Source: Dimorphilus gyrociliatus (lineage: Eukaryota; Animalia; Annelida). From it: a DNA stretch of 64,000 bases. The DNA lies in the NCBI GenBank assembly GCA_904063045.1, contig CAJFCJ010000003.1, positions 1,736,001-1,800,000 of the forward strand, given 5' to 3'. The notes below the pieces were generated by a model. It did not search any database and was not told the DNA's origin. It worked only from the letters and a program-made list of their open reading frames with translations. The first letter of the stretch is position 1. Each line of letters begins with the position of its first letter. Below are positions 5,731 to 62,515 of the stretch, piece by piece. A program made the position numbers and the translations under genes.

Positions 5731-8700
5731 TTACTTGTGGAAAATATCTAAAATATCCACAACTGTTGAAAAAGAATTTTCTTCATTCCGGTATTCCTTT
5801 ATCATCCATTTATCCACCGGATAAATAATAGAATCTTCAGCGTGTATTGGATTCGACAAAACTTTTGAATTTCGATTGATAATCATCACGCCATTTCTTT
5901 TTCTTATGAAAATCGAACATCCTCGGAGATTTTTAGTTCTCTTTGTGTAATAACTAACATCGCTCTGGCACAAATAGGCTGTAAGATAGGAAATATTTAA
6001 TTAGGAGAAAAACTTCTGCGTTTCTATGCAAGGTATACGATACAGTCAATTAATCATATTCCTGCGTACATTTAACTTATAAATTATACTTTGTAAAATA
6101 CAGATAAAATTACTTGTTAGTATATGGCGCTTTAGAAATTCTTTCAATTCCTTTTCATCGTAAGACGAAACTACATCAGGTAATTCCTTGCGAAGAAGAA
6201 AAAAATAAACTCAGTCACAATGGTACTTTTGTCAGACCTACCGTAATTGGAGCAAGGATGGTGACAGAATAGTTTAGTCGTTTTACTTCCTGAGAAAGAG
6301 CAGTTTTCACCAAAAGATTATAAAATGCCTTAAATCTCTCTTCGGCTCTAAGAACGTTCATAAAGTTCCCACTAGGGATATGAAGAGGCTGCAGATAACT
6401 TGAAATTGAATTCGCTTAAAAATGAATCTTAATTTTAAGTGCAAGCTGGCAATTGAAATATATATTGTATGATTTATCTTTCTGTCATGATATTACTAAA
6501 TAATTTAGGCATTCTTTCTAATTCTCTCTTTACAGAGAGAAAATTGACATCTCATTCCTATAAGTTCGTTCAATATTGGACAATTGATATTTCACACAAT
6601 GCACTCATGTTTAAATAATTTATCTTTAACATCGAAAGAGATCATGTGACCCTACTTTAATTACCATGTAAATCAAACGTTACCTCTGATATGAAAACAA
6701 TAGAACTTTTACAGCCAAGAATAGGATAAGTAAGAAGACGAGAGCATTGAAATTGTGATGATTTGTGACTACGAGAAATCCAATCAAAAATAGACTAAAA
6801 TAATAAATAGTCTTTAAATAATTACAATATTTAACAATAGAAACCTTTCTTCTATTTTTTTTATAAACAATGGATTTTCCAGCATATGTTTCTATTTTGT
6901 TGGTTTGTTTATTTTTAAGTGGATAAAGTCCTTGAATTGTATGATACTTAACAAACTCCTCTATATCATTGATTTTCTTTTTCATTTCTTTTAAACTACT
7001 CGCTTGCGGAACCAGAATAGTATAGTCATCTAATTCTCTGAAAAAGTTTTTTAGATTCTCACCCGCTTTAATTAACAATGCGAATTCAGCTGCTCTGTTA
7101 TGCTTTTCTACAATTTGATAGGCACTCTTAGCTATCGGAAATAACAACTTTGTAAAAAATAGTAATAATTAAACTCAAACAGCAGACCAGATTCCAGTGT
7201 TAAAGCTTGATCTATTACATGTATGACACCATTTCTAGCCATGATATCTCTTTTTATTATTCTAGACTGGTCGTTAATCGTTATAGTGTCATTTTGTAAT
7301 GTTATTTTTATTGTTTGTTTCTCTAACAATGTTAGCACCGTCATCTCATTAGCCAGTACAGTTGAACATAAAATGTCCGGCAGAATGTGGCTTAACAAAA
7401 TATCTATAATTTAATGTCTAAAAATATATCTATTAAAAACAAAAAGTACTCATAGGTATACTTTTTAGGCATTGATTCTTTTTAAGCCTCTTAAAGGCTT
7501 CATTAGTCGGAAGAAAGATAGTAAAACGCTTCTTCATATCGTCTAGTGACTCCAATAAGTTAATGTTTGATTTTTTTAAAGCTGAATTTCAATAATTTTA
7601 ATTATAATTGTTTAAAGCCGATAACTTTTTTACCGTTTAGAAATTCTGAATACTCCGGCCTCTGAATAATATCCAATAACGTTTTATCAACTATAGGTAA
7701 AGTATCCTTTACCCTGTATATGATGGCATTTTTTGAGTGGATAATTTCTGAAACTATAGGAACACAGTTGGCCGTAGAAATCTATATATGATTAGAACTG
7801 TTAATTAAAAATCAAATTATAATAAGCTTCTCTTTCTGTTACCCTTTTAGGATAATTAAAAATGTTGATGCGGACAGAAGATGTTGGATCGATATTTTGA
7901 AAAACAAAATTATTGTTAGAATTTCTTAGTTTAACAAATCCTTTGACAATTTGATTAAAGAAAGCTCTTTCCATGGCCATGTTTTCCCTATCTATTAGGT
8001 AACTTGAAGGGTCTGCACGATTTATTGTGACAAAATCATATTTATTTTCTCTCATTTCTTTCAGTATGTCATCTTTAACCTTAAATAAGGATTAGCTACG
8101 CTTACTTTGCAAACATATTTTTGTCACCTACCTTTCGCTCAAGACCAATAATTTGGTTATTGCTAGCAGCAAATATTGTATAATTTTGCTTGGCCTTAAG
8201 TATCTTAAACTCAGACAGAGCAGCTGAAAGCATATCTAGTTTCAGACTGCGAAGAATGGTCAACGGATCTTTCAATACTTCTTCTATATGTTTTGAGCAG
8301 ATTAAAATAAAGGTTTAAGGGCTAATCTATGTATCAACCTATTGGACAGCCAACACTGCTAACTTTTCTAGAGAACCCATAGCAGCATTCATACGTGATT
8401 ATTTCAGTTATCACTTTTTGCTCTCTCTTTTCTCTGTAAACATGAAGCAATAACATGTATATATGTTGTATATAGTTACAAGTGAAAAAATAGCCAACAC
8501 TTTTTTGCAAGTATAAGCCGTATCGGACGCATCACAATTAAAACTGACGTGGAACGTATGTCTTGTTAAAGACGAATCATTTTTTTCCATTGTTGTATTT
8601 TGGATGCACACATTAGGACTAATAAAAAAGAATTATATAGAATATCTCCAATAGCAGAGCTTGCTTTAAATTTACCCAGTCCACCATTTACTTCGCCCAA

Positions 8701-8928
8701 AAAGACCAAATTTAAATGCATAATCATCAACATAACTAAAAATCTTATCCTGGTAAGCTCCTAATCTGCTTTTCAGTTTACTAAAATTTATATCAAAAAT
8801 TAAAAGTGTAATTTTGAAGCTGTTCTTGTGTCAAACCTTTTCCACGATCTCTTAAATAGATTTCCCTTGTCAGCTTGCGCTTCAAAGACGGTGAAAAGAC
8901 AAAAAAGAATTACTAGTTTCGTTCTCAT
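5731..8928 (-). CDS. Periostin/TGFBI-like secreted protein (signal peptide, EMI, about 4 FAS1 domains)
   Basis: Signal peptide MRTKLVILFCLFTVFEAQA (ATG 8928). Spliced EMI hallmarks WTGPNVCIQ and YECCYGF...GCP. FAS1 motifs YTILVP, FVKYH, MARNGVIHVIDQAL, VTILAP, EFLKRHIL. Stop at 5731. Confidence 0.88.
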
Positions 8929-9611
8929 GTTTAATGCGAATTTGTATCTCTACGATTTTTCTCAATTTATACTTCTAAACAAATGTTTGCCAGCTGAGCA
9001 TGAAACAAGAAACTGTTTAGATATTTTTCAGTCTGGTTTCAATCTAAACTTTTTTCTGATTGATAATTACAAAGAGATACTATTATAAAATAAAAACTGT
9101 CGCTAAGTGCCAAAAATGAAAGAGAACGCAGAGATAAGCATAAGAAAAACTTGAATGCTTAATCTCAATAATCTATTTGTGATTTAAAAATGTTTTGTGT
9201 ATTTAAGACATCTATTAGATTTTAAATTTGAATGCCATGTATGTAATTTGTCATAAAGAATTCACTCTTATGACTTGGAGATGTTTTTGGAGAATATAGG
9301 TGACATTTATAGTTTCTGGAAGTCTATAATGCATCACGTATATATAAATTTCAGTCTCTCCAGGTTTTTAAGTAAAAGCACCAGTCAAGGTCTAATCAAA
9401 ATCAACAACTACCGTAAGGACAAGGAATAATATCGAAAAATAGTATTAGATTATATTAACATCTACATAGAACTCACAAACAGTATAGGATAAAGTCAGG
9501 AGATGATTGGATATTATTTTAAGGGGATGGTAAACACAATACATAAAATGGCAATTTTAAAGAAGGTAAAAGATGATGTTGAAGATTAGTGAACAAAATA
9601 ATTTGTAAATA

Positions 9612-9619
9612 TGACGTCA
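9612..9619. promoter_or_regulatory. Full palindromic CRE (TGACGTCA) about 250 bp upstream of the NNMT-like gene
   Basis: Exact ATGACGTCAT match; function is inferred from position only. Confidence 0.35.
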
Positions 9620-9864
9620 TATGGGACTTATCTGACTGTTAATGAAATGCAATATATAGTATATTTAGAAATTAGCAAACATAATATATTTTCTTATATT
9701 AATCTAAACGCACCAATTTACAACCTATGTGAAAACTTGCACAAAATAACAAAAGCAAAATAAGAACTACTAATATAGGTGGCGCTTGTAGTATCTAATA
9801 AAAGCTATTCCATTGTTTGATGAGCTCACTTCAATGGGTGAATCGCAACGGTTGACTTTGAAAA

Positions 9865-10575
9865 ATGCTGGCCTTCAGAGAAGATTACAATGATAAGGAA
9901 TGGCCTGATAACTTTATAAACAATTGGAGGAAGCCAGATGAAGAAAATCATTCAAACCTCCTTCATCTCCACGAATTCGTAAAAGGTTTGACCATAAAAG
10001 GAAAATATTTGGAAATTGGAAGTGGTCCATCCCCTATTGGAATTTTTTCGGCTAGCACAAAATTTGACGACATTACCTTATCTGATTTTTCTGTAGCTAA
10101 TATTGATCGTTTGAAAAAATGGAAGAGTGGAGGAAATCTCAGCAACATCATGACTCTGATTGAGTATGTGGCCAAGTTGGAAGGACGTGATGTTAATCAG
10201 CTGATGACTATTTCTCTGAGCAGAGTGAAGAACATTAGACACGCTGACTTGCTCAATGACGAAATATTACCCAAAGACGACAATAAATACAGTGCAATAT
10301 CTATGAACTTTGTACTTCTTTGTGCTTGTAAAACTAAGGAAGATCTGTTCAAAGCATTCACAAAGCTGTACAACAAGCTGACTCCAGGTGGAAGATTATT
10401 TGATTTCGGAGCCCTGAATACAAACAATTACAATGTTGGAGGAAGATTGTTTTCACACTGTGAAATCGATTTGGAAACGCTGGTAGTATTGGCGGAGAGA
10501 GCTGGCTTCAAAGTATTAAAGCAAGAGAAGCTAAATATGAATACACCATGCTACTGTATTGTTGCCAGTCGTTGA
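9865..10575 (+). CDS. NNMT/PNMT/INMT-family SAM-dependent small-molecule methyltransferase, single coding exon, 236 aa
   Basis: YLEIGSGPS (family motif I, cf. LIDIGSGPT), ITLSDFSVAN, LTPGG and NYNVGGRLFS (cf. YYMIGEQKFS); uninterrupted ORF. Confidence 0.88.
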   Translation: MLAFREDYNDKEWPDNFINNWRKPDEENHSNLLHLHEFVKGLTIKGKYLEIGSGPSPIGIFSASTKFDDITLSDFSVANIDRLKKWKSGGNLSNIMTLIEYVAKLEGRDVNQLMTISLSRVKNIRHADLLNDEILPKDDNKYSAISMNFVLLCACKTKEDLFKAFTKLYNKLTPGGRLFDFGALNTNNYNVGGRLFSHCEIDLETLVVLAERAGFKVLKQEKLNMNTPCYCIVASR

Positions 10576-11209
10576 AAAACCTATGTTGACTCTTCTTTAG
10601 AATCAAAAAATTTGATGAGCCAAAAATTATAGCAAACTATATTTCTTTCTGAACAAAAATAACAAAAATTTAATACAATTACAATAGAAGTTCGATACTT
10701 TATATATTTATATATACTTTTTCTACGGACAATAGCAAATCTTTTTCTTATTTCTGGAACAACCATGACAAAACTATTTGATTAATATCCCAAGATTTTA
10801 TGATATTCTAAAAGATATTTTAACTATGCTTTACGGTTAAACAATATCAACATTAGACGATTTTCCTGGAGATTTAATCTTTCCTTGGAGGGATAATGTC
10901 AAACCTGAAGCTGGAGGGTAAGGAAAGACTCTTGGACTTTTATTTGTCTGAAAGTTCCCAAAGCTTTAAATTAATTATTTAACAGTGGCTATAAAATTCT
11001 AAAATTGAACAATTGTTTGTACTAATTTCGTGAATAAAGTACTAAAAATACCTACAGAACTGCATTGTGTATGATTATCCATTAATTGTTTGCGCAGCTT
11101 GGTTATCTCTTCGTCTTTCTAATAAAATATTGTATTAGGTGATTAATTTAGCAAAAGCTCGCAAAAATAACCTCTTTCAATGAATTTTGTAATTCCCTGT
11201 TTTCTATGA

Positions 11210-12333: not shown

Positions 12334-15300
12334 TTATGACAGCGAATTATCATAAATTGAAGTTATTTTAAGATTATCAAAAAACGCTGTTGAAAAATTT
12401 GTAGTGCCCAAAGCAAGAAACCCATTGGACGATGAAGTTTCTGGGAGTATCGTAGTAAACAAAAATTGACCATTCATTTGCAAAGTCAGTGAGCTTCCCT
12501 AAATCAGGAGAAGTTTTACAAGCTAACTAATAACTAGGTTATTGCATACCTTCAAAACTATCTTGACAGTCAACCATTGATTAAAATGTAGCATATCGCT
12601 TGGAATTTCGGCATAAGTTCGATTATTTTTAGCTGGGATTAATGAGTACCGTATTATAAATATCTTAAAAAATATTAACCTTACAAAAATTTCCTGCAAC
12701 AGTTATTAGTTTTTTCTTCAAGTTAATATAAACAAAAGTTCCAGGACTATAACAAATATTACAGCCGCCATCCCTAACCCGAGCTCCTAAAACGATTCCA
12801 TCGCTTCCATTTTTGGGAACAAGAAAATCAATTGCAAATTGCACATCTGACCTATAGCAATAATTGACCTAACGTCATCAAATAAATTGACAAACTGCTA
12901 ACCATAGATAATTTCCAAATACAGCTACTGGTCTCGACATAGGGAAAGGGAGACAGGTGTCAACCGGAGGTTTAACAACCATTTGCTGAATGACTCCTTT
13001 GCGATTTTCATAATCTGTAAAATGCACCTCAAAAGTTCCCGCTTGTTGGGCAATGTTATATGGTTCCTCTGAGTCTCTATAATCTGCAAAATTTATTTTT
13101 TGGCGTTTTTTTTACTAATTGTTATATATTGAAAAGTATATTTTAGTTACTGTCAAAACTATCGAAGTAGGGCAAAGGAAACGGTACTGATTTTGGTGAC
13201 TCTTTGTGGAAGCCTTTACTACCTGTACTAAGAGTCGTTAGCGTAACAACAGTATTCCGTTTTAGGTGAAGTGTAAACGTTGAAGTGGAGTCAATCTGTT
13301 AAAACAAACTTCCCCATAAATTTTTTTAGATAGTAGCCATACTTGGAAAGTTTTAATTTCGATAAAATAGCTATCTTCAATGGCTTAAATTTCTTTGAAT
13401 TTAAGCATATTTTTATCAAAACTTTCTAAAGAAGTAACAAAAATAAAAAAATGAGTTAATTTGAAGCAATTGATAAGATTTATTAGAATGCATAAGTAAT
13501 GATAAAAATATCCTAATTTCGTAAAATTTTACGTGTAAAGTTCTCTAAACGGATATTTTTCGTGTATTGATGAAGGATATAGTAGAAAAACCGTTTAAGC
13601 AACCAACATACCTTTGATAGGAAATCACAAAGAAAAAAGTAAAACCTGTAAGACAACTGAGTTGCCTAGGATTTTTGCTAAGTAGAGTTTTATAATACAT
13701 TTTTCAGCGAAAATAGGCATTTAGTTAATTAAAATAACCAATAGAAATTATAGAAAGTACTCCTAAATAGTTAAAGAAATATAAAGTGAAAAATTTTTCT
13801 AGACTCACAAATATTGGATTTTGCCTCTGAAAAAGAGCTTCTTTCTTGTAGTCCTTAGTGAAATCACTCTGCCACACTTTGAGAGTAGTTATAGCTTTCT
13901 AAGAGAAACTAATTAGAGATAGGATATTATTAGATATAAAACATACAAATTTTCCTGAAAGTTTAAACGAAGCAATTTGATGCGAAGCCACTGGATATTT
14001 TGGCATGGGGTAAAAACAGGGAAACTCTTGGGGGTCCTTCCATAAAAAAAGCAACTCATTAGAATATAGATTGATGACTTGATAATATCAACCATAGTTT
14101 CAACAATAATAGTTAAGTGCTTTTCATCAGTTAAGCTTAAATATGTTCCTCCACCAGTTAAGTTTCCAACTCCATTTGAATGTCTTAGAAAGTACCAGCC
14201 AGGTTTCGTAAATTGAGTATGGTGAGCTGAGGCCCAAATAGGAGAATTTACTTCGTAATGACCACTCCAGGGTTCGCTGGCTGTCATTAAGCTACATCTA
14301 CCATAAGGAAGATTAGGATAATAACTGGCTATAAGATTCCAGGCAATCGATCTAGGTATTGTGGAAAACATGAGTAAATATTATTAATTAAAAGTAAATA
14401 CAAACGCTGTAAAAAACCCTTGAACGTAGCGTTCATTCAGGACCTATTATTAATAGAAATTGAAATAATTATATACATGTGTGATATGTACCCTAGCCCA
14501 GCATCCTCCTCCAAGTAGGTTATTCTCAGCACTATATTCTTCTGAACCCCATAGTATTTTGTCTGTTAACAGAGACTTCAGGGGATTTGCCCCAGTGAAA
14601 CCAGGATAGTGCACACTGCGTGAAAAATTTTTTACAAGCGACAAAGTGCTTTAGGTATTTTTACCCGATAACGTCTACAACTTGGGCAAGTTCAGGATCA
14701 TTAAGCATATCGTCTAAAATATTCCATTCGCCATCGGCTGCAACTATCTTTGTCTTCTGGTAGCCTAATTCATCTAAACGTTTTCTCAACATCTGATTTA
14801 TATAATTTTATATTTAAATATCACTTATCAAAAGAAATAACCTTAATGTAAAGAATATCGTAAGGTCTCTCATTCCATATCTAAAATAGTAAACAAAAAC
14901 TAAATAATTTTAAAAGTTCAATTTAAAACTAACTCCAACGAAATCTATAGTTAAATTATGAAATTTTTCTGCTCCAATAATCCAATTTGTTATATACTTA
15001 ACAAGTTTTGTTCTATTAGAGTAAGGGTTAGACTTTCCCCCACCAAGCCATCCTGGAAAAACCCACGGCAAACCGTAAAGTAAAATTTCTGGATTTCTCT
15101 TATAAAAAACATTTATTAGTCGAAATTGCAATTAATAAAAAAAGAAGGTACTTTTTTAGCTTCTTTCATTAAAAACCACTCGTAGCCTCTGTTGAAATTC
15201 AAGTCATTTTCTTCATGCATATGAGACGCTTCGGTTCCGTCTTCATCAATACATATTAATATCAAACTAACAATTTAGAAATTGCGTTACCCGTGCTCTG

Positions 15301-15666
15301 TGAATCACCGCCAATCTCCACTTTTAAAATTTGTAATGATGCTGCGAAATTAGGCTGTTTTTTATGCAGAATTTTAAAGGGAGTATTAAGACTTGAAAAG
15401 TTACTGACTTTAAAGAGAAAATCCAATATTTCATCACGATAAATCTTGGGATAATTTATCAGTAATTTTGAAGTTGCCTACGGAATAAATCTTGTTAAAA
15501 TTGAAATCACTCAGGCTTCAAAAAGTACTCCTCCTCCGCTGATAGCACCTATTCCATCAAATCGTCGACCATATCCATTTCTATCAGAAATTAAGTACTG
15601 AAAAGCATAACCGTGGGTTTGTAAACTTGTTAAGTAACTTAAAATAAGAGTTAAAGTAATTTTCAT
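12334..15666 (-). CDS. GALC: Galactocerebrosidase (GH59), multi-exon
   Basis: Signal peptide [21 protein letters not shown]; [14 protein letters not shown]; [11 protein letters not shown]; LWGSEEYS...GGGCWAR; WNLIASYY...PWSGHYEV...WASAHHTQF; C-terminal NGFLALGT...FDN. Stop at 12334-12336. Confidence 0.95.
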
Positions 15667-15686
15667 TGCTCTTTGTATATATCTAC

Positions 15687-15712
15687 AGTCACATGATATA
15701 GCTCATGTGACT
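15687..15712. promoter_or_regulatory. Inverted pair of MiT/TFE M-box (CLEAR-like) elements upstream of GALC
   Basis: AGTCACATGA-tatagc-TCATGTGACT is a perfect 10-bp inverted repeat, and each arm contains TCATGTGA. It lies 21-46 nt upstream of the ATG of a lysosomal hydrolase. Confidence 0.6.
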
Positions 15713-15740
15713 AGTTACCTTCAACTTGTAACAACTATCA

Positions 15741-15780
15741 TGATTGGTCACATTTCATTTCGTAATAACGCCTGACGTCA
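15741..15780. promoter_or_regulatory. CCAAT box (TGATTGGTCA, 15741-50) and full CRE (TGACGTCA, 15773-80) in the GALC/CEBPG divergent promoter
   Basis: Exact consensus matches in the 538-bp gap between the divergent ATGs at 15666 and 16205. Confidence 0.5.
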
Positions 15781-16204
15781 CAAGGATTTCCCCTGTATTC
15801 CCTAACGTTTTCAGCGTTTTACCGACCCCCGTTCTTAATTACCGGCACTTTTCCCGATTTCAAGAGGGTAAATCATCTATTTTATCAATTCTTATTCAGA
15901 ATATTAAATTGCCTAAAAAAACATTAGACTGTAATTTTTAAATTTTGGTTAAGATTCGATTTCGTAAGGGCATTGATACAGGTGTGATGATGAATTCCGT
16001 TATCCTCCTATTTTTTATACCGCTATATGATAAATTGATAATTAATAGAGTATTTAGCAAGATATTATTAATCAAAGCACGACGATTTGTAAAGTACGCC
16101 GCGGTCATTTTGATAACGCTTTTCTTAGCGACATCTAGTGGAGGCAATTGTTGTGAAATCGTCAGTGAAAGTCGTTAAATTGTTTCAGTTTAAATCTCTA
16201 AAAA

Positions 16205-16471
16205 ATGGCTCCAATGAAACCGGGAACAGCGCGAGTGCGATCATCACCTCTTGATAAAAATAGTCAGGAATACCGAGAGGGTCGTGAAAAGAACAATATT
16301 GCCGTTAGAAAAAGCAGAATGAAAAGTCGCTTAAAGCAATTAGAAACAAATCAGCTGGTGGAAGAATTAAAAAAAGAAAATGCAGAATTAAAAGAAAGAG
16401 TTAATCTGTTATCTAAAGAATTGGGGGTTTTAAAAGATTTGTTCATCACTTATGCAGAGGACAAATCTTGA
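16205..16471 (+). CDS. CEBPG: C/EBP gamma-like bZIP factor, 88 aa, single exon
   Basis: SPLDKNSQEYREGREKNNIAVRKSRMKSR basic region and zipper ending LSKELGVLKDLF (cf. CEBPG LTKELSVLKDLF); no activation domain. Confidence 0.9.
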   Translation: MAPMKPGTARVRSSPLDKNSQEYREGREKNNIAVRKSRMKSRLKQLETNQLVEELKKENAELKERVNLLSKELGVLKDLFITYAEDKS

Positions 16472-17166
16472 CGAAAATTTAATGTTATGACGACTTTAGT
16501 GGATCATTTTTTGTAGATTTCAATATTTATAACTTGCTTACAGAGTTGTTTCAGTTTGTCTTTATCTTTTAATAAAATTTTCAAAACTTTTCAATTTACT
16601 AAATAAATATTGCTTTTTTAAAAAATATATCAAAGTTTCTTTAATACATGTTGAATTAATTAGAAATATCTTTTGATGTTCTTCATCTATAATTTACCAC
16701 TTAAGTAAAAACTAAGTTATGAGGTAATCGAAATTACAGTTTTCAGACTAGCGAAAATTGTATATTCTATATAATTACATTTTTGAATGTTCACTACTAA
16801 AATAAAGAAAATTATATTTCTATCTACTGTGAGCCTGACTTTAAATGATAACTGCCCGTTTTTGAGAAACCTAGGTCAGCAGCCAGTAGCAAACATTGTA
16901 TAAAATATATTGTACAAACTAAATCACTCTTATAACACAATTTATCCGAGTGTACATATGTATGATATATATATATAAAGTAAACTTACATATATATACT
17001 GAAAAGAGGATAACAGAACATGAAAGAATCGCGTTAAAAATTTCTGAAATAATCGATCGTCATGCCAAAGAAATAAGTAAGGTGTTATATAAACTTTACT
17101 AAACATTCGAAAGTGCATAATAGATAGATACATTTCCCATAATATTTCAATATATTACGGAAAAAG

Positions 17167-19281
17167 TTACCAATCACCCTCAGTTTTTATTTTCTGTGCG
17201 ACTGGTATGCCATTAGAGCCAGGAACTAATCTTGCTGACGGAGAGTTATCAATACGAAGTAGTTCTTCTTCTAAATCAAATGTGGTATCAAAGTTGTTGA
17301 GCAGGCCATTTGAAGTAAAATTAGATTCATCATCTAACATAGGAGAGGAAGTAGCCGATGGACTTCTCCGTAACCTTCTAAGACCCCGATCCGTAACTTT
17401 TACTCGGCTCGGACTGCCTGGCCTTTTAAAGGTTTCACTTTCGCATGAGGGAAACACAGTTTGCATTGAAGGATAGCTTATCGTAGATGGTTGTAGTAAA
17501 CTCAAAATTCCGCTTTGCTGGGGTTTAGACTTATACTTCATTGATAATGAATGGATATAATCTAAGCAACGGAAGAGACGATTACGGTCGTCAGGTGGAA
17601 CTAGGCCAATATCGGCTAATGCAAGGTTTGAAATATCGCTGATCGCTTCCATCCATTTTCGTTCGAGAGGTAGTGCAGCTATTAGAAATTGTTAATTCAA
17701 CTAATTTTTCGTACAAAGGAAATTTAAAAACTTTCAGAAAAAGACAAGTTATACAAACCTAAATTTAAGGAATCTGGAGTATTAATTCTATCCCAATCTT
17801 TAGTAGCAACTTTAGTAGGAATTGGCGTAGAATTCGTCGGGAGCACCCGCTTTATTGCCTTCGGCTTTACACTGTAATACGATAATTCACTTATCTAAAT
17901 AAACCTATCTATTTAAACATTTTAAATCTTACATTTTTTCTTTTACTACTTTTCTTTTTTCTCCTTCAATTGCATCCTCAACGCTGCTCACGCTACGCTC
18001 TTTACTAGAGCGGGATTTATTGGACACATCACTTCCAACCATACCTATAAACTCATTGTTTTCGTTATAATTAGCATATGCTTCCAAAATTTTATATCTG
18101 GTTCTATATTCTTCTGAGAAGAAATTTTTTGAATGTGCTATGCGTAAGATATGTTGTTTTCCTGATTTCACCGTTGGATATTTATGCTTGCAAGTTGGAC
18201 AGTAATAAAATCCATTTTCATTGTGTTTTTTCTGATTTTTAGCGAATCGAATAAATTCCTCTCTTAACCTGTTTGAAACGTATTGTAAATTTTTCGGTTG
18301 GAATTGGCTATAATGTTGAAGAGTTGCGTCCATTACTTGCATGCATTTAACGCTCATATTTCCCTTTACTCTATATTTATCAAGTTCATCTGTATTTAAA
18401 GTTCGAGCTTCTGATTGCCTCTTTGGGCCACTATTCTTATTGGGCATGGATTTTATAATTTTAGATGTTTTTATAATAAACTTTCCAGCCATTCCTGCCG
18501 TTAAATTGTGTTTTTGTATTATGTGCTTTAGCACAGATATTCTTTGAAAATTTCGGTAAGAACACTTGGAACAAGCAAATATCTGGTGCGGTGAATTAGT
18601 AGGTTTCAATTTTAGATTCAATTTTTCTGGTTCTTCGGCTCTGACGTTTGTATTTTCTTCTGTATAATTAGTCAATTCTGTTTCCACAACGTCTTTTCCT
18701 AACTGATTCTCAAGGCGTGTCTTCCAGATATTGGATATTGGTAAATTTAAAGATTTTACAATATCTGGGTGCTGTCGGTTGCAATGTTTCACCATAATTT
18801 CAACACTGGATATAAATCTATCAGGATGGAGGGCACAAGTGAAAGATCTCGCATTCATGTCACCCCAATCGATCCCTTTATCGACACAAAGATCGTAAAA
18901 ATGCTCAAGAATCTTGTGACGATGTGTTTGGAAATGATTGTCATGTTTCCGACCTGACAGTTTGTACTTGCATACTCTGCAATAGTTTAGGTCCTTTATT
19001 AAAGATTTCTCACGCGAAACTAATAAAGCATCCTCATCAATATCTGTTGCACTTTTGTTGGCTTTGCTTTGAAATGTTCGATGTGTTTTACGTTGTCCCA
19101 TAGGCAAAGTTAAATTGTTTATTCTGTTTTCTTCACTTTCAGCCTCAGATGCGGATTCTTCAGAAAGACCTTTCCCACTGACACATTCATTGTTCCTAAA
19201 GTTATTACCTAGTTTAATCCGTAGATTAAATGTCTTATCACAGTTTGAATTTCGGTTAGCAGATTCACTTTTGTAAGACAT
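17167..19281 (-). CDS. Multi zinc-finger protein (about 4 dispersed C2H2/matrin-like fingers) with a conserved-looking C-terminal block
   Basis: Large exon (ATG 19281) contains CRVC..HFQTHRH, CALH..HCNRQH, CSKC..HIIQKH and CPTC..HILRIAH. It splices through a small exon near 17870-17756 to the terminal exon (ERKWMEAISDISNLALADIGLVPPDDRNRLFRCLDYIH...*). Confidence 0.65.
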
Positions 19282-56540: not shown

Positions 56541-59500
56541 TTAATATTCATCAATGAACGTAAATGTAGGTCCTGCGTTGGGTCCAATCATCGGATCAAT
56601 GCCTTCCTCAATAGGTGTTCTAACCAATTTTTCTCCTTGCACCAAGAGACTATACATCATACTCATACAAAATCGCATCTTATTTGTATGCCCATTAAAT
56701 AGTTCATGAAAACATTTTAATAGCTTTGTATACATTGAATCAAACTGTAAAGAATATCTATGAGCTTTACTGTTGATTTTATATTTCCATATTTGAGGAT
56801 CTTCTATCATGGGCCAGATACCGTCAGCCGCTAGAGGGCGATTAGGACCATTATAACTGTACGTTATGTTGCATGTTTGCAGATTTGTGCCGTTATGACA
56901 GTACTCAGTCTCCATCATGTATAGGTCACGGTTTTTCCCCTCAGAAATACAGGTTTCATTTGAATGAATTATTAAATCTCTTTCTTTGGCCATTTGAGAA
57001 AAAAGATAATAGTGTGAAAGATGTTTACTTGTTGTTAAAGGGTTACAAACGTCGGAACCCTCTCCCTCTTCCACAATTTGTGCTACTGCTCTTTTAGCAG
57101 TTCTTAAGTTAGTTACTGCAAATGGTTTTCCATCAACATCCGAATACCAATCATCATCTTTTACTTGTCGAGATTTTAACCCTGTAAAGATAGTAGTATT
57201 TTCTAGTTCAGCTTCCTTTTCTAACTGAATTATACCATGTAGAATATTGTTATATAGCTGAGATATTGTGTTTGGATTTGTTGTTATTGGGCATTTATAG
57301 GTAAGCACATCAGCATGAATGCTTTCTTTTAAGAGGTATTTCAGGCAACGGGTTTCAACAGTTGCTGCTGGTTTTTCAATTTCCATGAAAGTATGTTCAA
57401 TTCTACTTTTTGACAACGGCCCAAGAACCATTACTATATCCGGATTATTAGGTAGTGGCGACGGAAAAACAGGTACTGCGCTTGCTTCATTGAAAATAGG
57501 TTTACCACCTATACCATTTAAAATATTGGCAGCCAAAGTAGTATGAGCCATTTCCTGTATCATTATATGTTTTAAAGTTTTTTTTGCAGCTTTATTGTAT
57601 CCCGGTCGAATGGATAAAAGAGCTGTCATGTATAACGGGATTGTTGATAACTCAAAGCGAATTGCAGTTTGTATAGACCTTTTGATGTCATCTAAGCTTA
57701 CTTTCGGAGGGTTCCCAATCGTTGGGTTTTCAAGCCACCTCAAAATCATATTTGTAGTTTTTTTCGATAAATCTCTGGATATAGGCATAAAATTATGATG
57801 CTCTAAAGGCAGCGTCATTGCCATTTTCAGTGGTCGAAGTCTTTGTAATACGTTCGTAATATCTTCAAGATGGATGAAAGGTCTCATGACGGGATAGAGG
57901 TAAGCATAACGAGTAAAAACTTCGCGTACATTTCCGTACCAAGTGGGTTCTTTCACTTCAGGGAAGTCATAAAAAATATTTAAGTTTATCATTAAATCAC
58001 ACCATTGGCTTGTATTATTTTTAGACGTGTAATTGAGTAAAACGGTATAAATTTGACTATCGATGGTGCACTCCTTTCGATATTTCCCTAATTTAATACC
58101 TGGATTGTTGGCTTTAATATTTAACAATATAAGCCCGTCTTGATCAGTCCTTGTTGGTTCTGGTAGAGTTACGCCATCTTCAGGATCATTTATAGCAGGA
58201 TTGTCTGAATCACAGAAAAAATCTAACATAGGTCTTGGCCGCTTCATCCAGTTCAATGGGAGAAAGCTCGAAATTTTCAATCCGTCGATTGGCATTCCAA
58301 ATTGACTAGCATAAATTTCAAAACTATGTGTGTCATTTGGATCCATTCTCAAAACATTGTGAGTAAGACTGTGAACGATCACTCCATCAGAATTTTCACG
58401 TAGAACAATATTCATACAATTTTTGCCTTCCAGTTGAGCCACTAATAAAGGTATACTGCGTAGTCGTTCAACTGCTTTCTGATGATAAATTGTCATTTCT
58501 AATCCGTTCGGTGGAAACTCTTGAATACTGTTCATGTTATAAAGAAACATCTTGTTTTTGTATAAAACTGATCCTAAATCAGTAAAATCGTTTGGGCATT
58601 TACTAAAATTTGTATCATTTATAACATCTGTTGGAACAATTACGTGTAAGTTTTTCAAAATACCGTCATGAAGATCTCCATTTGGGCGCTTTCGAAAAGA
58701 GTTGCTAAAATCGACGAGTACAGAACTCTTTTCATAATTAACATGAAAAAAGGCGGTACAAAAATTTTCTTCGTATCGGATGTTACCACCTTGTCTAGGA
58801 TTACAGCCAAGTCCTTTTAGAACTCTTGTAAATCGATGAAATTGACGGGATTCCAAAGAATGTGATGGTCCTATTGTTCCACTGATTTCCCCGTACGTAA
58901 AATTATGCTTTGTTCTGTCTCGTACATATCTATCCATTGTGAATTTGATTGACAGCTTACCTTCTTTTTTACCCCAAAAATCGATTGTTCGCTCCTTTAA
59001 CTGTTTTACAATTTTAGAGTTCTCGTCAACTTCTTTCATCCAAGACAGAGAATATAGTGCACTTTTTATGTATGAACTAAATCTAGGTGCTCTAAAAAGT
59101 TCGGGAATACGTGGCCATAAATCTTGAATAACTGCCACTTCCATTTTTCCTCTAATGCTATGGCCAATTTGAACTTCTAAATCAAAGAATTCACTGTTTT
59201 GGCACATAGGATCAAGATCAACAAATTTCCCGGAGTGATAAGTCATTGGTCCTGAAATGTAAAAGTAATTTCTATTCAGCCTCGAGTAAAAACACTGTAT
59301 ATTCGTTAATACACAAACATTTACTAACTTAATATCGGTATATTATTAATAATCCATCTATCTTTTAGGCAGTTGTGCAAAAGCACTTTCAAAATGGAAA
59401 CGTCAGAAAGAATAGTTTCGTTATATTTTGATATTTGTAGCGTGTCAATTTGCTTCACATATCAACGGAAAAATGAATTGATATTCAAAAAATGTAGAAA

Positions 59501-62500
59501 AGTACTTAGTAATTGAAAATTTAAATTAGAGTCTTCTTAAGCATACTAGTAAATATTTCAAAGCCGACTTTAATAAACCTTCAACCATATTCTTCAAAAT
59601 TAATTATAGCTTTTGAATTGTTAAACGAGCAAGTTTAAAACCTATTATAGTCTGCATTGGATTTCCTAATACTTTTGTAAAGTCCTAAATGAAAAATTAA
59701 GCATGTATCAGTTAAGTTTGCTGAGTCATTATAGGTTCAGAGTGTATCTTCGAGAAAAGTGCTTCAGCTTCCCTCTTCATGTTTTTGATAAATATATAAA
59801 AGATATTTTAAGACGATCATCAAAGTAAAAATCTTTTGAACTCTTATTGAGGTCATTCATTAATTACTTCTTTATACTATTTAATGGACTTTAATGAACA
59901 TATGATAAAGATTTTCGACACTTTAACACAACCTTTTATTGAGCTATGTATTTTAAATAAAATGCTAGCATTGTTTAATCTTCATGATTGTTATCTAATT
60001 AAAATAAAAAGTACCTCTTTTCTGAAAAAGTGTCAGATATAATAAAATATAATTTTAATTAGCTAAAGTATATTCGCCTCATACGTCAAAAAGACTTTTA
60101 AAATATTGTAAATAAACAAGGGATTCATTTCGTATTTTTCTTTGATGTATAGCTTTGATTGTAAGACACATTCTTATTTATATGTTCATTGGTGCTATCA
60201 GCTGTAAATTACTTGCATTAAAACACCAACGTTGTCAAACCTGTGTTGACCACAATCATGTATAGGAATAATTAGACAGATTGATAAAAATTTATTAGAT
60301 GATTGGATAAGAAAAATCACAACAACTGCTATCGAAGTTTTGAAAATGCCAGATAATTGTGATTATTCTCATCTCATATTTAGTATACGCTTCTTTTAAT
60401 ACGTTTTACACAAAGTAACCTAAAACACTCCCAACGCAGATGGCTTTTACGTATTTGTTAACATTTAAAAACACATTTTTTGAGAAAATCAAATGACAAG
60501 TGCATTGTTTATGATGATCTAAAATTTAAAAAGATTTCGGAGAGCGGTGCGAAAATCTCGATTACAAACGAAATACAAGAGAGGATTAATAGTGCTGTTT
60601 ACGTAAGCCAACCAGTAAGAGTTTTCATATGCAACAGGATTAACGCAATCATTACAATACGCTACCATAGGCCACATAATACAGAATGGGAGCCAACAAA
60701 CCAAAAACATCAGAATAATGACTCCCAAAGTACGGAGCACTCTCGTATGTTGCTCTGTTTTTCTTCTATTTGAGTTTTTAATTTTGATTTCATCTTGACC
60801 ACTTGTTTTCGTAACAGATATATCGACAGTAACTTCGTCATCATCTATTGATGGTCCCATATTTTTATCCATAGCCTCAACTTTAAGTTTTTGCCTGTAC
60901 AAAGCTCTCAAAGATCCTGTATAGAAAACTATCATAGCTAAAATAGGAATATAATACACGCAAATTGCTTGAGACACAACAAATTTTTTGTCAGGAACGA
61001 AATAGCAATCTGTAGATATTTTTTTAAGATCTAATACTCGAAAAGTTATTACAGGTGGAAGCCACACTATCAACCCAACAATCCAACTGCCAACAGACAT
61101 CAATGTAGATCGTCTAATGGTTGCAAGAGACTTATATTGCAACGGGCGATTTAGTGCCAAAAATCGATCATATGCCACTAATATTAAATGAAATATGGAA
61201 ACAGTACAACAAGTAAAATCCAAAGCAACCCAGGCAGTACATAAATTATTTCCAAGAGGCCAATAGCCATAGATTGTAAACACATTCATTCCACCCATAA
61301 CAAAGACACCTACTATTAAATCGGCCACAGCAAGAGAAACAACATACACATTCGAAGCGTTTCGCAATTTTTTATCATATATTACGCAAAGAATAACGGT
61401 AATATTAGCCAGAACTGTGATGAGAGTGAGTAATATAAGTGGAGGGGCTAAAACTTCTGCGTTTCTTGACGATTGCTCTGTTATGTTCGAGCTCATCTTG
61501 CCAATTGACGTGGCGTCAGACAACCTGATTTTTAAATATAAACGCAGGACAAATAATTCGATTGGGTTCATTCTTTCAATTAAGTCAAAGAATACTATAA
61601 AAATAGCTCTCTACACTTACACCTTAATAAAATGTTAATATAATAATTGGCCCTATTTATATTTAACACATGTGAGTTTTCCAAACTAAATCTTCCTTTT
61701 AAATAATTTTTAATTTTAATGCGAGCTACTGACCATAAACAGGTTGACCAATGATAGGATCTTGCTTTGGATCTGAAGTGCAATAGCCATTTTTGTAGCA
61801 AACCCTCCTAATAGTAACATTTTCAAATCGGAAATCGTTTGATCCCTAAGCAAAGCACATACAAATTTAACAAATCAATATCAACAAGAAAATACTAAAC
61901 CATTGGAGAAAATCCTCCTTGTGTTGTATTTCCATAAATTATATTCCATTGAGTAAACTCTCTCATATTGTAGTGCTTTGCATTGTTATTTGCCGTTGGT
62001 GGATCAGCGTACAAAAAACCAGAAAAATGAAGTCTGGGCCAACCAAGATAATTGGTACCGGAATATTTCGTAGCTGTACTTTCAAACATCTAAACTTTTA
62101 CAACAGTAATTAGGAATAAATACCTTTACGACAAAAAAGAGCAAATTCATCTTCACCGCCTCTACAATTTGGTTTCTCATCGCATACTTCACTCCATTCA
62201 ATACAATTTCCATCATAGCATTCAAATTCACAAGCTTTGTAAAATCTTATAAGAGATAATTATGCATAATCTTTGAGCTTACTTTTATTAAGGAACAAGT
62301 TTGTTGATTTTCTTAGGAAACCTTCTTGTAAAAACTTTTGTTGGACTTTCAATTGAACGAAAATCCCTACCAGTATTGTGATGATAAAAAATAGAATTAC
62401 ATAACTGTCAAAATTCAAAAAAGATAAAATCACTATATTAAAACGTTTCAGGTACCAACGTTAAGCGTGTTACAGATATAACCCTTTTTTTCTCCTCAGT

Positions 62501-62515
62501 AGCGCTTTTCTGCAT
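56541..62515 (-). CDS. Type II membrane protein: TM anchor, LDLa, then VioB/RebD/StaD-like enzyme with C-terminal ferritin-like domain (1094 aa, 6 exons)
   Basis: Exons 62515-62460, 62404-62283, 62234-62124, 62073-61901, 61845-61734, 59251-56541; all GT-AG and phase-consistent, total 3285 nt. VioB-like motifs: PRLHFSG..ADPPTAN, GSNDF, KFVDLDP, YAYLYPVM, FMPISRDLS..ILRWL, QTAIRFELSTIPLY..ALLSI, QEMAH..LAANIL, EEGEG, SHY, AGPTF. Confidence 0.88.
60519..61496 (-). CDS. Orphan aminergic-type class A GPCR (muscarinic/histamine-H1-like), single coding exon, nested in intron 5 of the VioB-like gene
   Basis: 7 hydrophobic segments; SLAVADLIVG, TM3 Asp (VALDFTCC), DRF, CWLP, YWLAYVNSTINPLLY. Likely start MSSNITEQ at 61496 (the ORF extends to 61571). 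Confidence 0.9.
   Translation of the reverse strand: MSSNITEQSSRNAEVLAPPLILLTLITVLANITVILCVIYDKKLRNASNVYVVSLAVADLIVGVFVMGGMNVFTIYGYWPLGNNLCTAWVALDFTCCTVSIFHLILVAYDRFLALNRPLQYKSLATIRRSTLMSVGSWIVGLIVWLPPVITFRVLDLKKISTDCYFVPDKKFVVSQAICVYYIPILAMIVFYTGSLRALYRQKLKVEAMDKNMGPSIDDDEVTVDISVTKTSGQDEIKIKNSNRRKTEQHTRVLRTLGVIILMFLVCWLPFCIMWPMVAYCNDCVNPVAYENSYWLAYVNSTINPLLYFVCNRDFRTALRNLFKF

Follow-up and report, generated by a model that had tools for sequence, protein, structure and literature searches.

LDL-receptor class A modules (LDLa, the complement-type modules of PF00057) have spread through animal mosaic proteins as class 1-1 exons, in keeping with Patthy's exon-shuffling rules, and modules of this class are expected to insert in the phase-1 intron that follows a leader exon. 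One setting in which they occur is the stem of type II transmembrane serine proteases (TMPRSS2, TMPRSS6/matriptase-2, enteropeptidase, and corin), where a cytoplasmic tail, a signal anchor, and LDLa lead up to a catalytic ectodomain. Here we consider an LDLa exon of the annelid Dimorphilus gyrociliatus, exon 3 of a minus-strand gene lying in a 64,000-nt stretch of contig CAJFCJ010000003.1 (forward-strand positions 1,736,001 to 1,800,000; this whole stretch is hereafter the window, and positions are counted from its first letter). An earlier reading of the window (the original prediction) had proposed that this exon was shuffled onto a bacterial-type enzyme. The account that we consider quite probable is that a real, maintained LDLa exon was inserted, in the dinophilid annelids, into the old phase-1 leader intron of a secreted ferritin-like enzyme that is distantly related to VioB.

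Exon 3 resembles described LDLa modules in its six-cysteine framework, its Gly-x-Cys-Ile core, the Asp after Cys4, and the Asp-Glu before Cys6, and also in having about 36 residues on a phase-1-bounded exon of its own, an extracellular context, and a score above the family cut-off. It departs from them in the short Cys1–Cys2 loop of the dinophilid copies (3 residues versus about 6), in the missing aromatic residue two positions before Cys4, and in the Asn and Gly at the Ca2+ site of the window species, where the sister species keeps both Asp. Its likeness to the stems of the serine proteases named above is one of layout (tail, anchor, LDLa, catalytic ectodomain), with the anchoring predicted in the present case, and the LDLa modules of TMPRSS2, TMPRSS6, and enteropeptidase are among the structural and sequence matches of exon 3. 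Unlike in those proteins, however, the catalytic part is a PF12902 ferritin-like enzyme, and SEA, SRCR, and CUB modules are absent. We considered and rejected membership of that protease family: there is no C-terminal trypsin-fold protease domain, Pfam finds PF12902 alone in the enzyme body, and the resemblance is architectural only.

On the enzyme side, the bacterial iminophenyl-pyruvate dimer synthases VioB, StaD, and RebD (TIGR04492) likewise combine a PF12902 domain with an N-terminal P-R-[IL]-H-F..T-A-N-N motif. Assignment of the window enzyme as a VioB equivalog was rejected, with TIGR04492 reaching 13.5 bits on exon 4 (model positions 4-29) against an NCBIfam cut-off of 1250 and giving no match on the 901-aa body. 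The relation to VioB thus appears distant, and its chemistry should not be transferred. Closer comparisons are provided by animal homologues that carry the UniProt label "iminophenyl-pyruvate dimer synthase domain-containing" (Lingula XP_013383910, Glandiceps XP_077992063, and sequences of Branchiostoma, Ciona, Styela, and Clavelina), which share with the window an enzyme body at 32-36% identity, cysteines restricted to animals, and a phase-1 intron between leader and enzyme, Lingula sharing two more introns. They differ in what precedes the enzyme, some having a plain signal peptide, the tunicates a TSP1 module, and one B. belcheri model four LDLa modules; the window has an anchor and one LDLa. 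In the literature library that was searched, no paper linked VioB or PF12902 to these animals.

The identification of exon 3 begins with its reading frame. The exon reads as 2 nt, 36 codons, and 1 nt, and hence is in phase 1 on both sides; its acceptor AG lies at 62236-62235 (preceding intron ending acaaag) and its donor GT at 62123-62122 (following intron starting gtattt). Direct reading of the sequence agrees with the original prediction of a 111-nt symmetric exon between phase-1 introns of 48 and 50 nt, and the peptide of 62232-62125 is the six-cysteine peptide quoted there. Two alternative acceptors named in the same place, at 62245 and 62089, were rejected: they would add 11 and 16 nt, respectively, and by hand arithmetic the resulting frames never rejoin the enzyme frame. 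Insertion of this symmetric exon into a recipient intron of phase 1 kept the reading frame intact; by the same symmetry, skipping of the exon keeps the frame as well, and isoforms with and without LDLa are therefore possible.

Searches and folds were run exon by exon, each exon serving as its own query. The PF00057 profile, a check proposed in the original prediction, matches exon 3 at 27.0 bits (gathering cut-off 24.1; E 5e-6), aligning residues 2-29 of the exon with profile positions 7-34. With phmmer against PDB chains, exon 3 matched LDLa modules of LDLR, VLDLR, LRP2, TMPRSS6, and enteropeptidase, single-module chains giving E 8e-5 to 3e-4. As a chance control, we trained a hidden Markov model (HMM) on 8 LDLa units taken from other loci in this genome, with neither the query nor its orthologue among them. 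The exon 3 frame reached 30.5 bits with this model, compared with 7.6 bits for the runner-up in the six frames of the 64-kb window and a top score of 13.4 bits over 40 block-shuffled windows; the six-cysteine LDLa pattern has a single instance in the window and a single one in the orthologous 22.7-kb locus of the sister species, and the two stand at orthologous places. An AlphaFold2 model of the exon has a mean predicted local distance difference test score (pLDDT) of 89, and the PDB matches listed by Foldseek are all LDLa modules, at template-modelling (TM) scores of 0.6-0.84 and root-mean-square deviations mostly of 0.6-1.8 A, with E-values that are weak, the module being small. These results, together with the orthologous exon described next, confirm exon 3 as a genuine LDLa module, quite probably maintained by selection, and bear out the six-cysteine identity first assigned to it.

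The closest relative of exon 6, which encodes the main body of the enzyme, is a protein at 69% identity (P0002) from the Logan assembly of run SRR23372228. The locus that encodes it, L002, matches the window in layout, down to a nested G-protein-coupled receptor (GPCR) gene at L002:8606-9613, and the exons before its large exon measure 98, 111, 173, and 112 nt. Reading the sequence located an LDLa exon of identical length and phases at the same place, so that the search for orthologs suggested in the original prediction ends in a positive result. Between the two species, 17 of the 36 residues are identical, including the six cysteines, the Gly, the Ile, the Asp after Cys4, and the Asp-Glu pair, and the LDLa frame is the only one open in both; the alternative frame that is open in the window has a stop in L002. 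With dN at 0.54 and dS saturated, the LDLa module evolves faster than the enzyme, its framework being held. In a blastn comparison of the two loci, exon 4 through the GPCR aligned at 71% DNA identity and the LDLa and leader exons stayed unaligned. Lengths and phases of exons 2-6 chain unbroken in both species, and the kept frame, splice sites, and exon lengths in L002 give comparative support to the predicted inclusion of exon 3 in the mature mRNA. Intron 3, exon 4, and exon 5 of L002 contain no ATG, and its exons 4 and 5 are conserved and open; its conserved enzyme N-terminus can therefore be translated only from upstream exons.

Within the module, all six cysteines are present and the spacings from Cys2 to Cys6 are canonical, aligning without gaps to LDLR modules. 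The Cys1–Cys2 gap, a detail missed in the original prediction, is 3 residues instead of the usual 6 or so (canonical C-x6-C-x4-5-C-x6-C-x5-C-x8-10-C). The same ungapped alignment puts Asn in place of the Asp before Cys5 and Gly in place of the Asp two residues after Cys5; the first of these changes had already been reported as a sign of a partly degenerate Ca2+ motif, and that description holds. With the Asp after Cys4 and the Asp-Glu pair, the window module retains three of the four side-chain ligands, and the L002 copy retains all four; since L002 keeps Asp both before and after Cys5, the Asn and Gly of the window are a local degeneration. In canonical LDLa modules, a ligand lysine is clasped by an aromatic residue that stands two positions before Cys4; the modules of both species lack this residue. 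Judging by these residues, a purely structural role would be as likely as ligand binding.

In the genome as a whole, at least 150 LDLa matches above the Pfam cut-off were found over 78 Mb (from 1971 first-look candidates), class 1-1 LDLa exons are common, and those of the paralogue locus L005 are also in phase 1-1. A search for the donor gene found a closest paralogue in the genome at 49% identity, and no donor could be named. Some of the LDLa matches form tandem arrays, apparently duplicated, for example at C25:1022861-1052091 and C7:474204-483481.

In the recipient enzyme, exon 6 encodes a ferritin-like PF12902 domain at residues 525-753 (173 bits, over the gathering threshold), in a single copy in the genome. 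An exhaustive HMMER search with the enzyme returned 2308 relatives, of which the best after the sister species are animal proteins (E down to 1e-111, in Glandiceps), with Saccoglossus, several Branchiostoma, and Lingula following and Ciona, Styela, and Clavelina lower down. This overturned, and led us to reject, the impression from a word-index search of a worm-only gene with bacterial cousins. In a quick maximum-likelihood tree, all 15 named animal sequences fall on one side of a branch (Shimodaira–Hasegawa-like approximate likelihood-ratio test [SH-aLRT] 99), the dinophilids stand beside Lingula (96), tunicates form one group (100), and hemichordates and cephalochordates each form a group (100) and join at 83; the animal branching order looks species-like. 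Introns 4 and 5 of the window gene occupy the same alignment columns, in the same phases, as the Lingula introns at ..FNSV/GTGNF.. (phase 0) and ..QSVE/D.. (phase 1), and Ciona has a phase-1 intron near the latter position. Of the cysteines in the enzyme body, six are shared by 10-13 of the 13 animal sequences compared and by 0 of 15 bacteria, and the animal homologues begin with signal peptides. Comparison of these sequences indicates that bilaterians already possessed the enzyme as a resident, secreted protein long before the dinophilid lineage arose, and that any bacterial origin predates the protostome–deuterostome split. From the animal clade and the introns shared with Lingula it follows that the LDLa module joined an animal enzyme that had long been resident and was already secreted. 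The Streptomyces-type homologues P0003, P0004, and P0011 start with M-S-YLGYPRL.., aligned exactly with the start of exon 4, so that, compared with the bacterial protein, exons 1-3 have been added at the N-terminus. The statement that a module "was shuffled onto the acquired gene" thus stands as to an LDLa exon added N-terminally to an enzyme with bacterial relatives, and fails as to a recent or dinophilid-specific acquisition; the companion claim that the locus is native animal DNA plainly holds.

The position of the insertion can be read from the same homologues. A phase-1 intron stands just ahead of the Y-L motif in Lingula, Glandiceps, B. belcheri, and Ciona, at a distance of 1-5 residues; in amphioxus the distance is one residue, counted to ILRLSF. 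The signal-peptide exon of Lingula ends in phase 1 and the next exon begins 5 residues before the Y-L..P-R-x-H-F motif, with nothing between; Glandiceps has the same arrangement. In Ciona, an exon encoding TSP1 ends in phase 1 one residue before the motif, and in B. belcheri four LDLa exons and a spacer exon, each in phase 1-1, lead up to the first enzyme exon, which opens in phase 1 with one residue ahead of ILRLSF. In the dinophilids, phase 1 marks both the end of the hydrophobic exon and the start of exon 4, with exon 3 alone standing between the two. Among the Lingula, Glandiceps, amphioxus, and tunicate homologues, no LDLa was found save in one B. belcheri paralogue (P0032), the leader directly preceding the motif. 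The LDLa exons of that paralogue lie in L011 (JALCYT010000069.1) at 6559-6681, 7294-7413, 7733-7855, and 9529-9657; upstream of it, in head-to-head orientation, is another PF12902 gene (L011:1-2429, minus strand), whose gene model looks unreliable over its first 180 residues. N-terminal TSP1 modules occur in the tunicate homologues P0061, P0091, P0093, and P0107; in Ciona intestinalis (L014, AP043569.1) the TSP1 exon spans 1501-1707, with its phase-1 end just before the first enzyme exon, and the next gene downstream has a weak TSP_1 match.

Several other explanations of these observations deserve to be weighed. It might be supposed that exon 3 is a chance cysteine-rich open frame or a decayed pseudo-exon, given that its Pfam score exceeds the cut-off by only 3 bits and that two positions of its Ca2+ site are degenerate; yet the score of 30.5 bits against at most 13.4 in shuffled windows, an orthologous exon with all cysteines and both splice sites kept, and a fold that matches LDLa leave this idea a negligible probability. 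Alternatively, exons 1-3 could be confined to a minor isoform or a separate small upstream transcript, with the main product starting at the ATG at 62089 or at Met 59246. We think this unlikely. The ATG at 62089-62087 is indeed in frame, 16 nt upstream of exon 4, and exon 3, being symmetric, can be skipped without a frameshift, but the ATG is missing in L002, where exons 4 and 5 are conserved and open although they contain no Met. Moreover, neither a stop codon nor a long gap separates exon 3 from exon 4 (the intron has 50 nt), and a leaderless cytosolic form would be out of character for an enzyme that has animal-specific conserved cysteines and whose other animal homologues all have leaders. 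As it is not conserved in L002, the in-frame ATG is probably a coincidence.

Two further alternatives concern the order of events. The strong form of the "acquired gene" claim would have a recent transfer from a bacterium to a dinophilid followed by capture of host exons, and it could draw on the word-index protein search, which, apart from one animal relative, gave Streptomyces-type proteins at 26-27% identity (an Atlas lookup agreed), as well as on the single 2.7-kb exon that holds the main body of the enzyme. The exhaustive search, however, found animal homologues closer than the bacterial ones, the animals form one split in a species-like order and share animal-specific cysteines, and two intron positions with their phases are common to Lingula and the leader intron to deuterostomes; we therefore regard such a recent transfer as very improbable. 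The other alternative makes LDLa an ancestral part of the bilaterian enzyme family that most lineages have since lost. In its favour are the four LDLa exons of P0032, which stand at the same intron position and repeat the order LDLa-then-enzyme in a distant lineage. But P0032 is nested in the cephalochordate clade beside paralogues without LDLa; Lingula, the sister of the dinophilids in the tree, passes from leader exon directly to enzyme exon; both hemichordate models are without LDLa by Pfam; and the modules themselves differ, both dinophilid copies having the short Cys1–Cys2 loop (C-E-F-E-C) and the amphioxus modules the normal long one, in copy numbers of one versus four plus a spacer exon. 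An ancestral LDLa thus seems unlikely, and we read the dinophilid and amphioxus acquisitions as independent.

A number of points weigh against the account of a maintained LDLa exon inserted in the dinophilids. The splice junctions are predicted from genomic sequence. The two species do not share a conserved exon 1 or start codon, and the exon 1 donor is weak; in the window species, the ATG at 62089 could in principle yield a leaderless product. The alignment supplied for fold prediction consisted of LDLa paralogues, which biases the model towards the LDLa fold. Two changes at the Ca2+ site and a Cys1–Cys2 loop three residues short mean that canonical Ca2+ and ligand binding is not assured. The tree came from a quick search, with midpoint rooting and without bootstraps, and its dinophilid rows were flagged for odd composition. 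Finally, the dinophilid sample consists of two genomes, and the insertion can be dated only as later than the split from the Lingula lineage.

Turning to the protein that the gene would produce, the N-terminal exons of the window encode a 19-residue basic tail, an 18-residue hydrophobic stretch (Kyte-Doolittle mean for exon 2 of 3.3 over 15 residues), and a basic linker, and L002 has about 13 hydrophobic residues after 5 residues. The positive-inside rule suggests that the hydrophobic stretch of the window is an uncleaved signal anchor; the L002 segment may instead be a cleaved signal peptide. Secretory targeting is well supported, which permanent anchoring is not. The original description of the exon as an "anchoring and ligand-binding module" accordingly does not hold for LDLa as far as anchoring goes, a function that would fall to the hydrophobic exon. 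In the mechanism that we propose, insertion of the LDLa exon in the dinophilid lineage into the ancient phase-1 intron between leader and enzyme would have given a product with a short basic cytoplasmic tail, a hydrophobic signal anchor, a basic linker, one disulfide-knotted LDLa module of the Ca2+ type, and an enzyme of about 1000 residues on the luminal or outer side. LDLa would be the first folded unit on that side, directly followed by the enzyme, and might act as a Ca2+-stabilised, membrane-proximal docking module or as a spacer or stem. Both the type II topology and the docking or stem role are proposed by analogy with type II transmembrane serine proteases and LDLR-type modules.

The features of the gene are collected in Table 1. 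Exon 1, read by hand, is tentative and the least certain part of the gene model: its phase 2 agrees with the acceptor of exon 2, and an alternative donor at 62444 would give a 40-nt intron. A product from the ATG in intron 3 would be leaderless, starting much like the bacterial homologues. The GPCR nested in intron 5 is complete, intronless, of the rhodopsin family, and on the same strand as the enzyme gene, and the nesting is kept in the sister species.

Table 1. Coordinates of the enzyme gene in the window and of its counterpart exons at the sister-species locus L002.
Feature	Position	Strand	Description
Putative exon 1	62460..62515	minus	56 nt; ATG 62515; basic cytoplasmic tail; phase-2 donor ac/gttggt at 62459; hand-read, with phase arithmetic
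Exon 2, signal anchor or leader	62283..62404	minus	122 nt; phase 2/1; 18-residue hydrophobic segment and basic linker
Intron 2	62235..62282	minus	48 nt; GT..AG (gtaagc..aag); phase 1
Exon 3, LDLa module	62124..62234	minus	111 nt; phase 1 in, 1 out; profile, PDB, fold, ortholog L002:7864-7974, chance test
Intron 3	62074..62123	minus	50 nt; GT..AG (gtattt..cag); phase 1; contains ATG 62089-62087, in frame with exon 4
Exon 4, enzyme N-terminus	61901..62073	minus	173 nt; phase 1/0; ..YLGWPRLHF..PPTANNN.. motif
Exon 5	61734..61845	minus	112 nt; phase 0/1; boundaries match Lingula columns and phases
Intron 5	59252..61733	minus	2482 nt; phase 1; nested intronless rhodopsin-type GPCR open reading frame 60519-61571
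Exon 6, enzyme main body	56541..59251	minus	2711 nt including stop; phase 1/end; 901-aa open frame
L002 putative exon 1	L002:7636-7649		no sequence conservation with window exon 1
L002 exon 2 counterpart (positional)	L002:7710-7807		13-residue hydrophobic core
L002 LDLa exon	L002:7864-7974		111 nt; phase 1-1; PF00057 29.0 bits
L002 exon 4	L002:8023-8195		same length as window exon 4

Relatives outside the animals showed several features of their own. The bacterial P0004 (L003:6001-8742, GC 0.72) adjoins genes for an amine oxidase/FAD protein, an MbtH-like protein, a ketosynthase, and an ABC exporter, and its surroundings have the look of a biosynthetic cluster. Some bacteria split the enzyme into adjacent genes for a 648-aa N-terminal and a 344-aa ferritin-like protein, as on the contig of P0007 (Logan ERR11523672), whose neighbours include genes for a phosphodiesterase, a UbiA-type prenyltransferase, and MFS transporters. 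A 1.28-Mb contig that looks eukaryotic (L010, ENA ERZ25072196, GC 0.34) carries tandem PF12902 genes at 8001-11153 and 15195-18269, encoding proteins of 1050 and 1024 aa with many N-glycosylation sequons; the tree groups these with P0094 and P0062 in a clade of their own that lies outside the animal one, and the LDLa pattern was not found in the L010 locus.

Exon 3 is a clean case of textbook exon shuffling. The shuffling of LDLa is itself already known, and the value of the case lies in its context, in that the donor class (1-1), the recipient intron (phase 1, after the leader), and the outgroup gene structures are seen together. It also corrects the impression of a worm-specific bacterial gene that a word-index search gives, and brings into view a so far unstudied family of secreted ferritin-like enzymes of marine invertebrates (annelids, brachiopods, hemichordates, amphioxus, and tunicates), the nearest non-animal relatives of which include bacterial proteins, one of them in a biosynthetic-cluster-like neighbourhood. 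Different animal lineages gave this enzyme family different extracellular modules. Somewhat more doubtful, if still a serious possibility, is the broader view in which the leader phase-1 intron served as a repeated, independent landing site for class 1-1 modules (one LDLa in dinophilids, four LDLa and a spacer in an amphioxus paralogue, TSP1 in tunicates), in a family that may trace back to one pre-bilaterian transfer, by which a bacterial natural-product-type enzyme was acquired and fitted with a leader exon.

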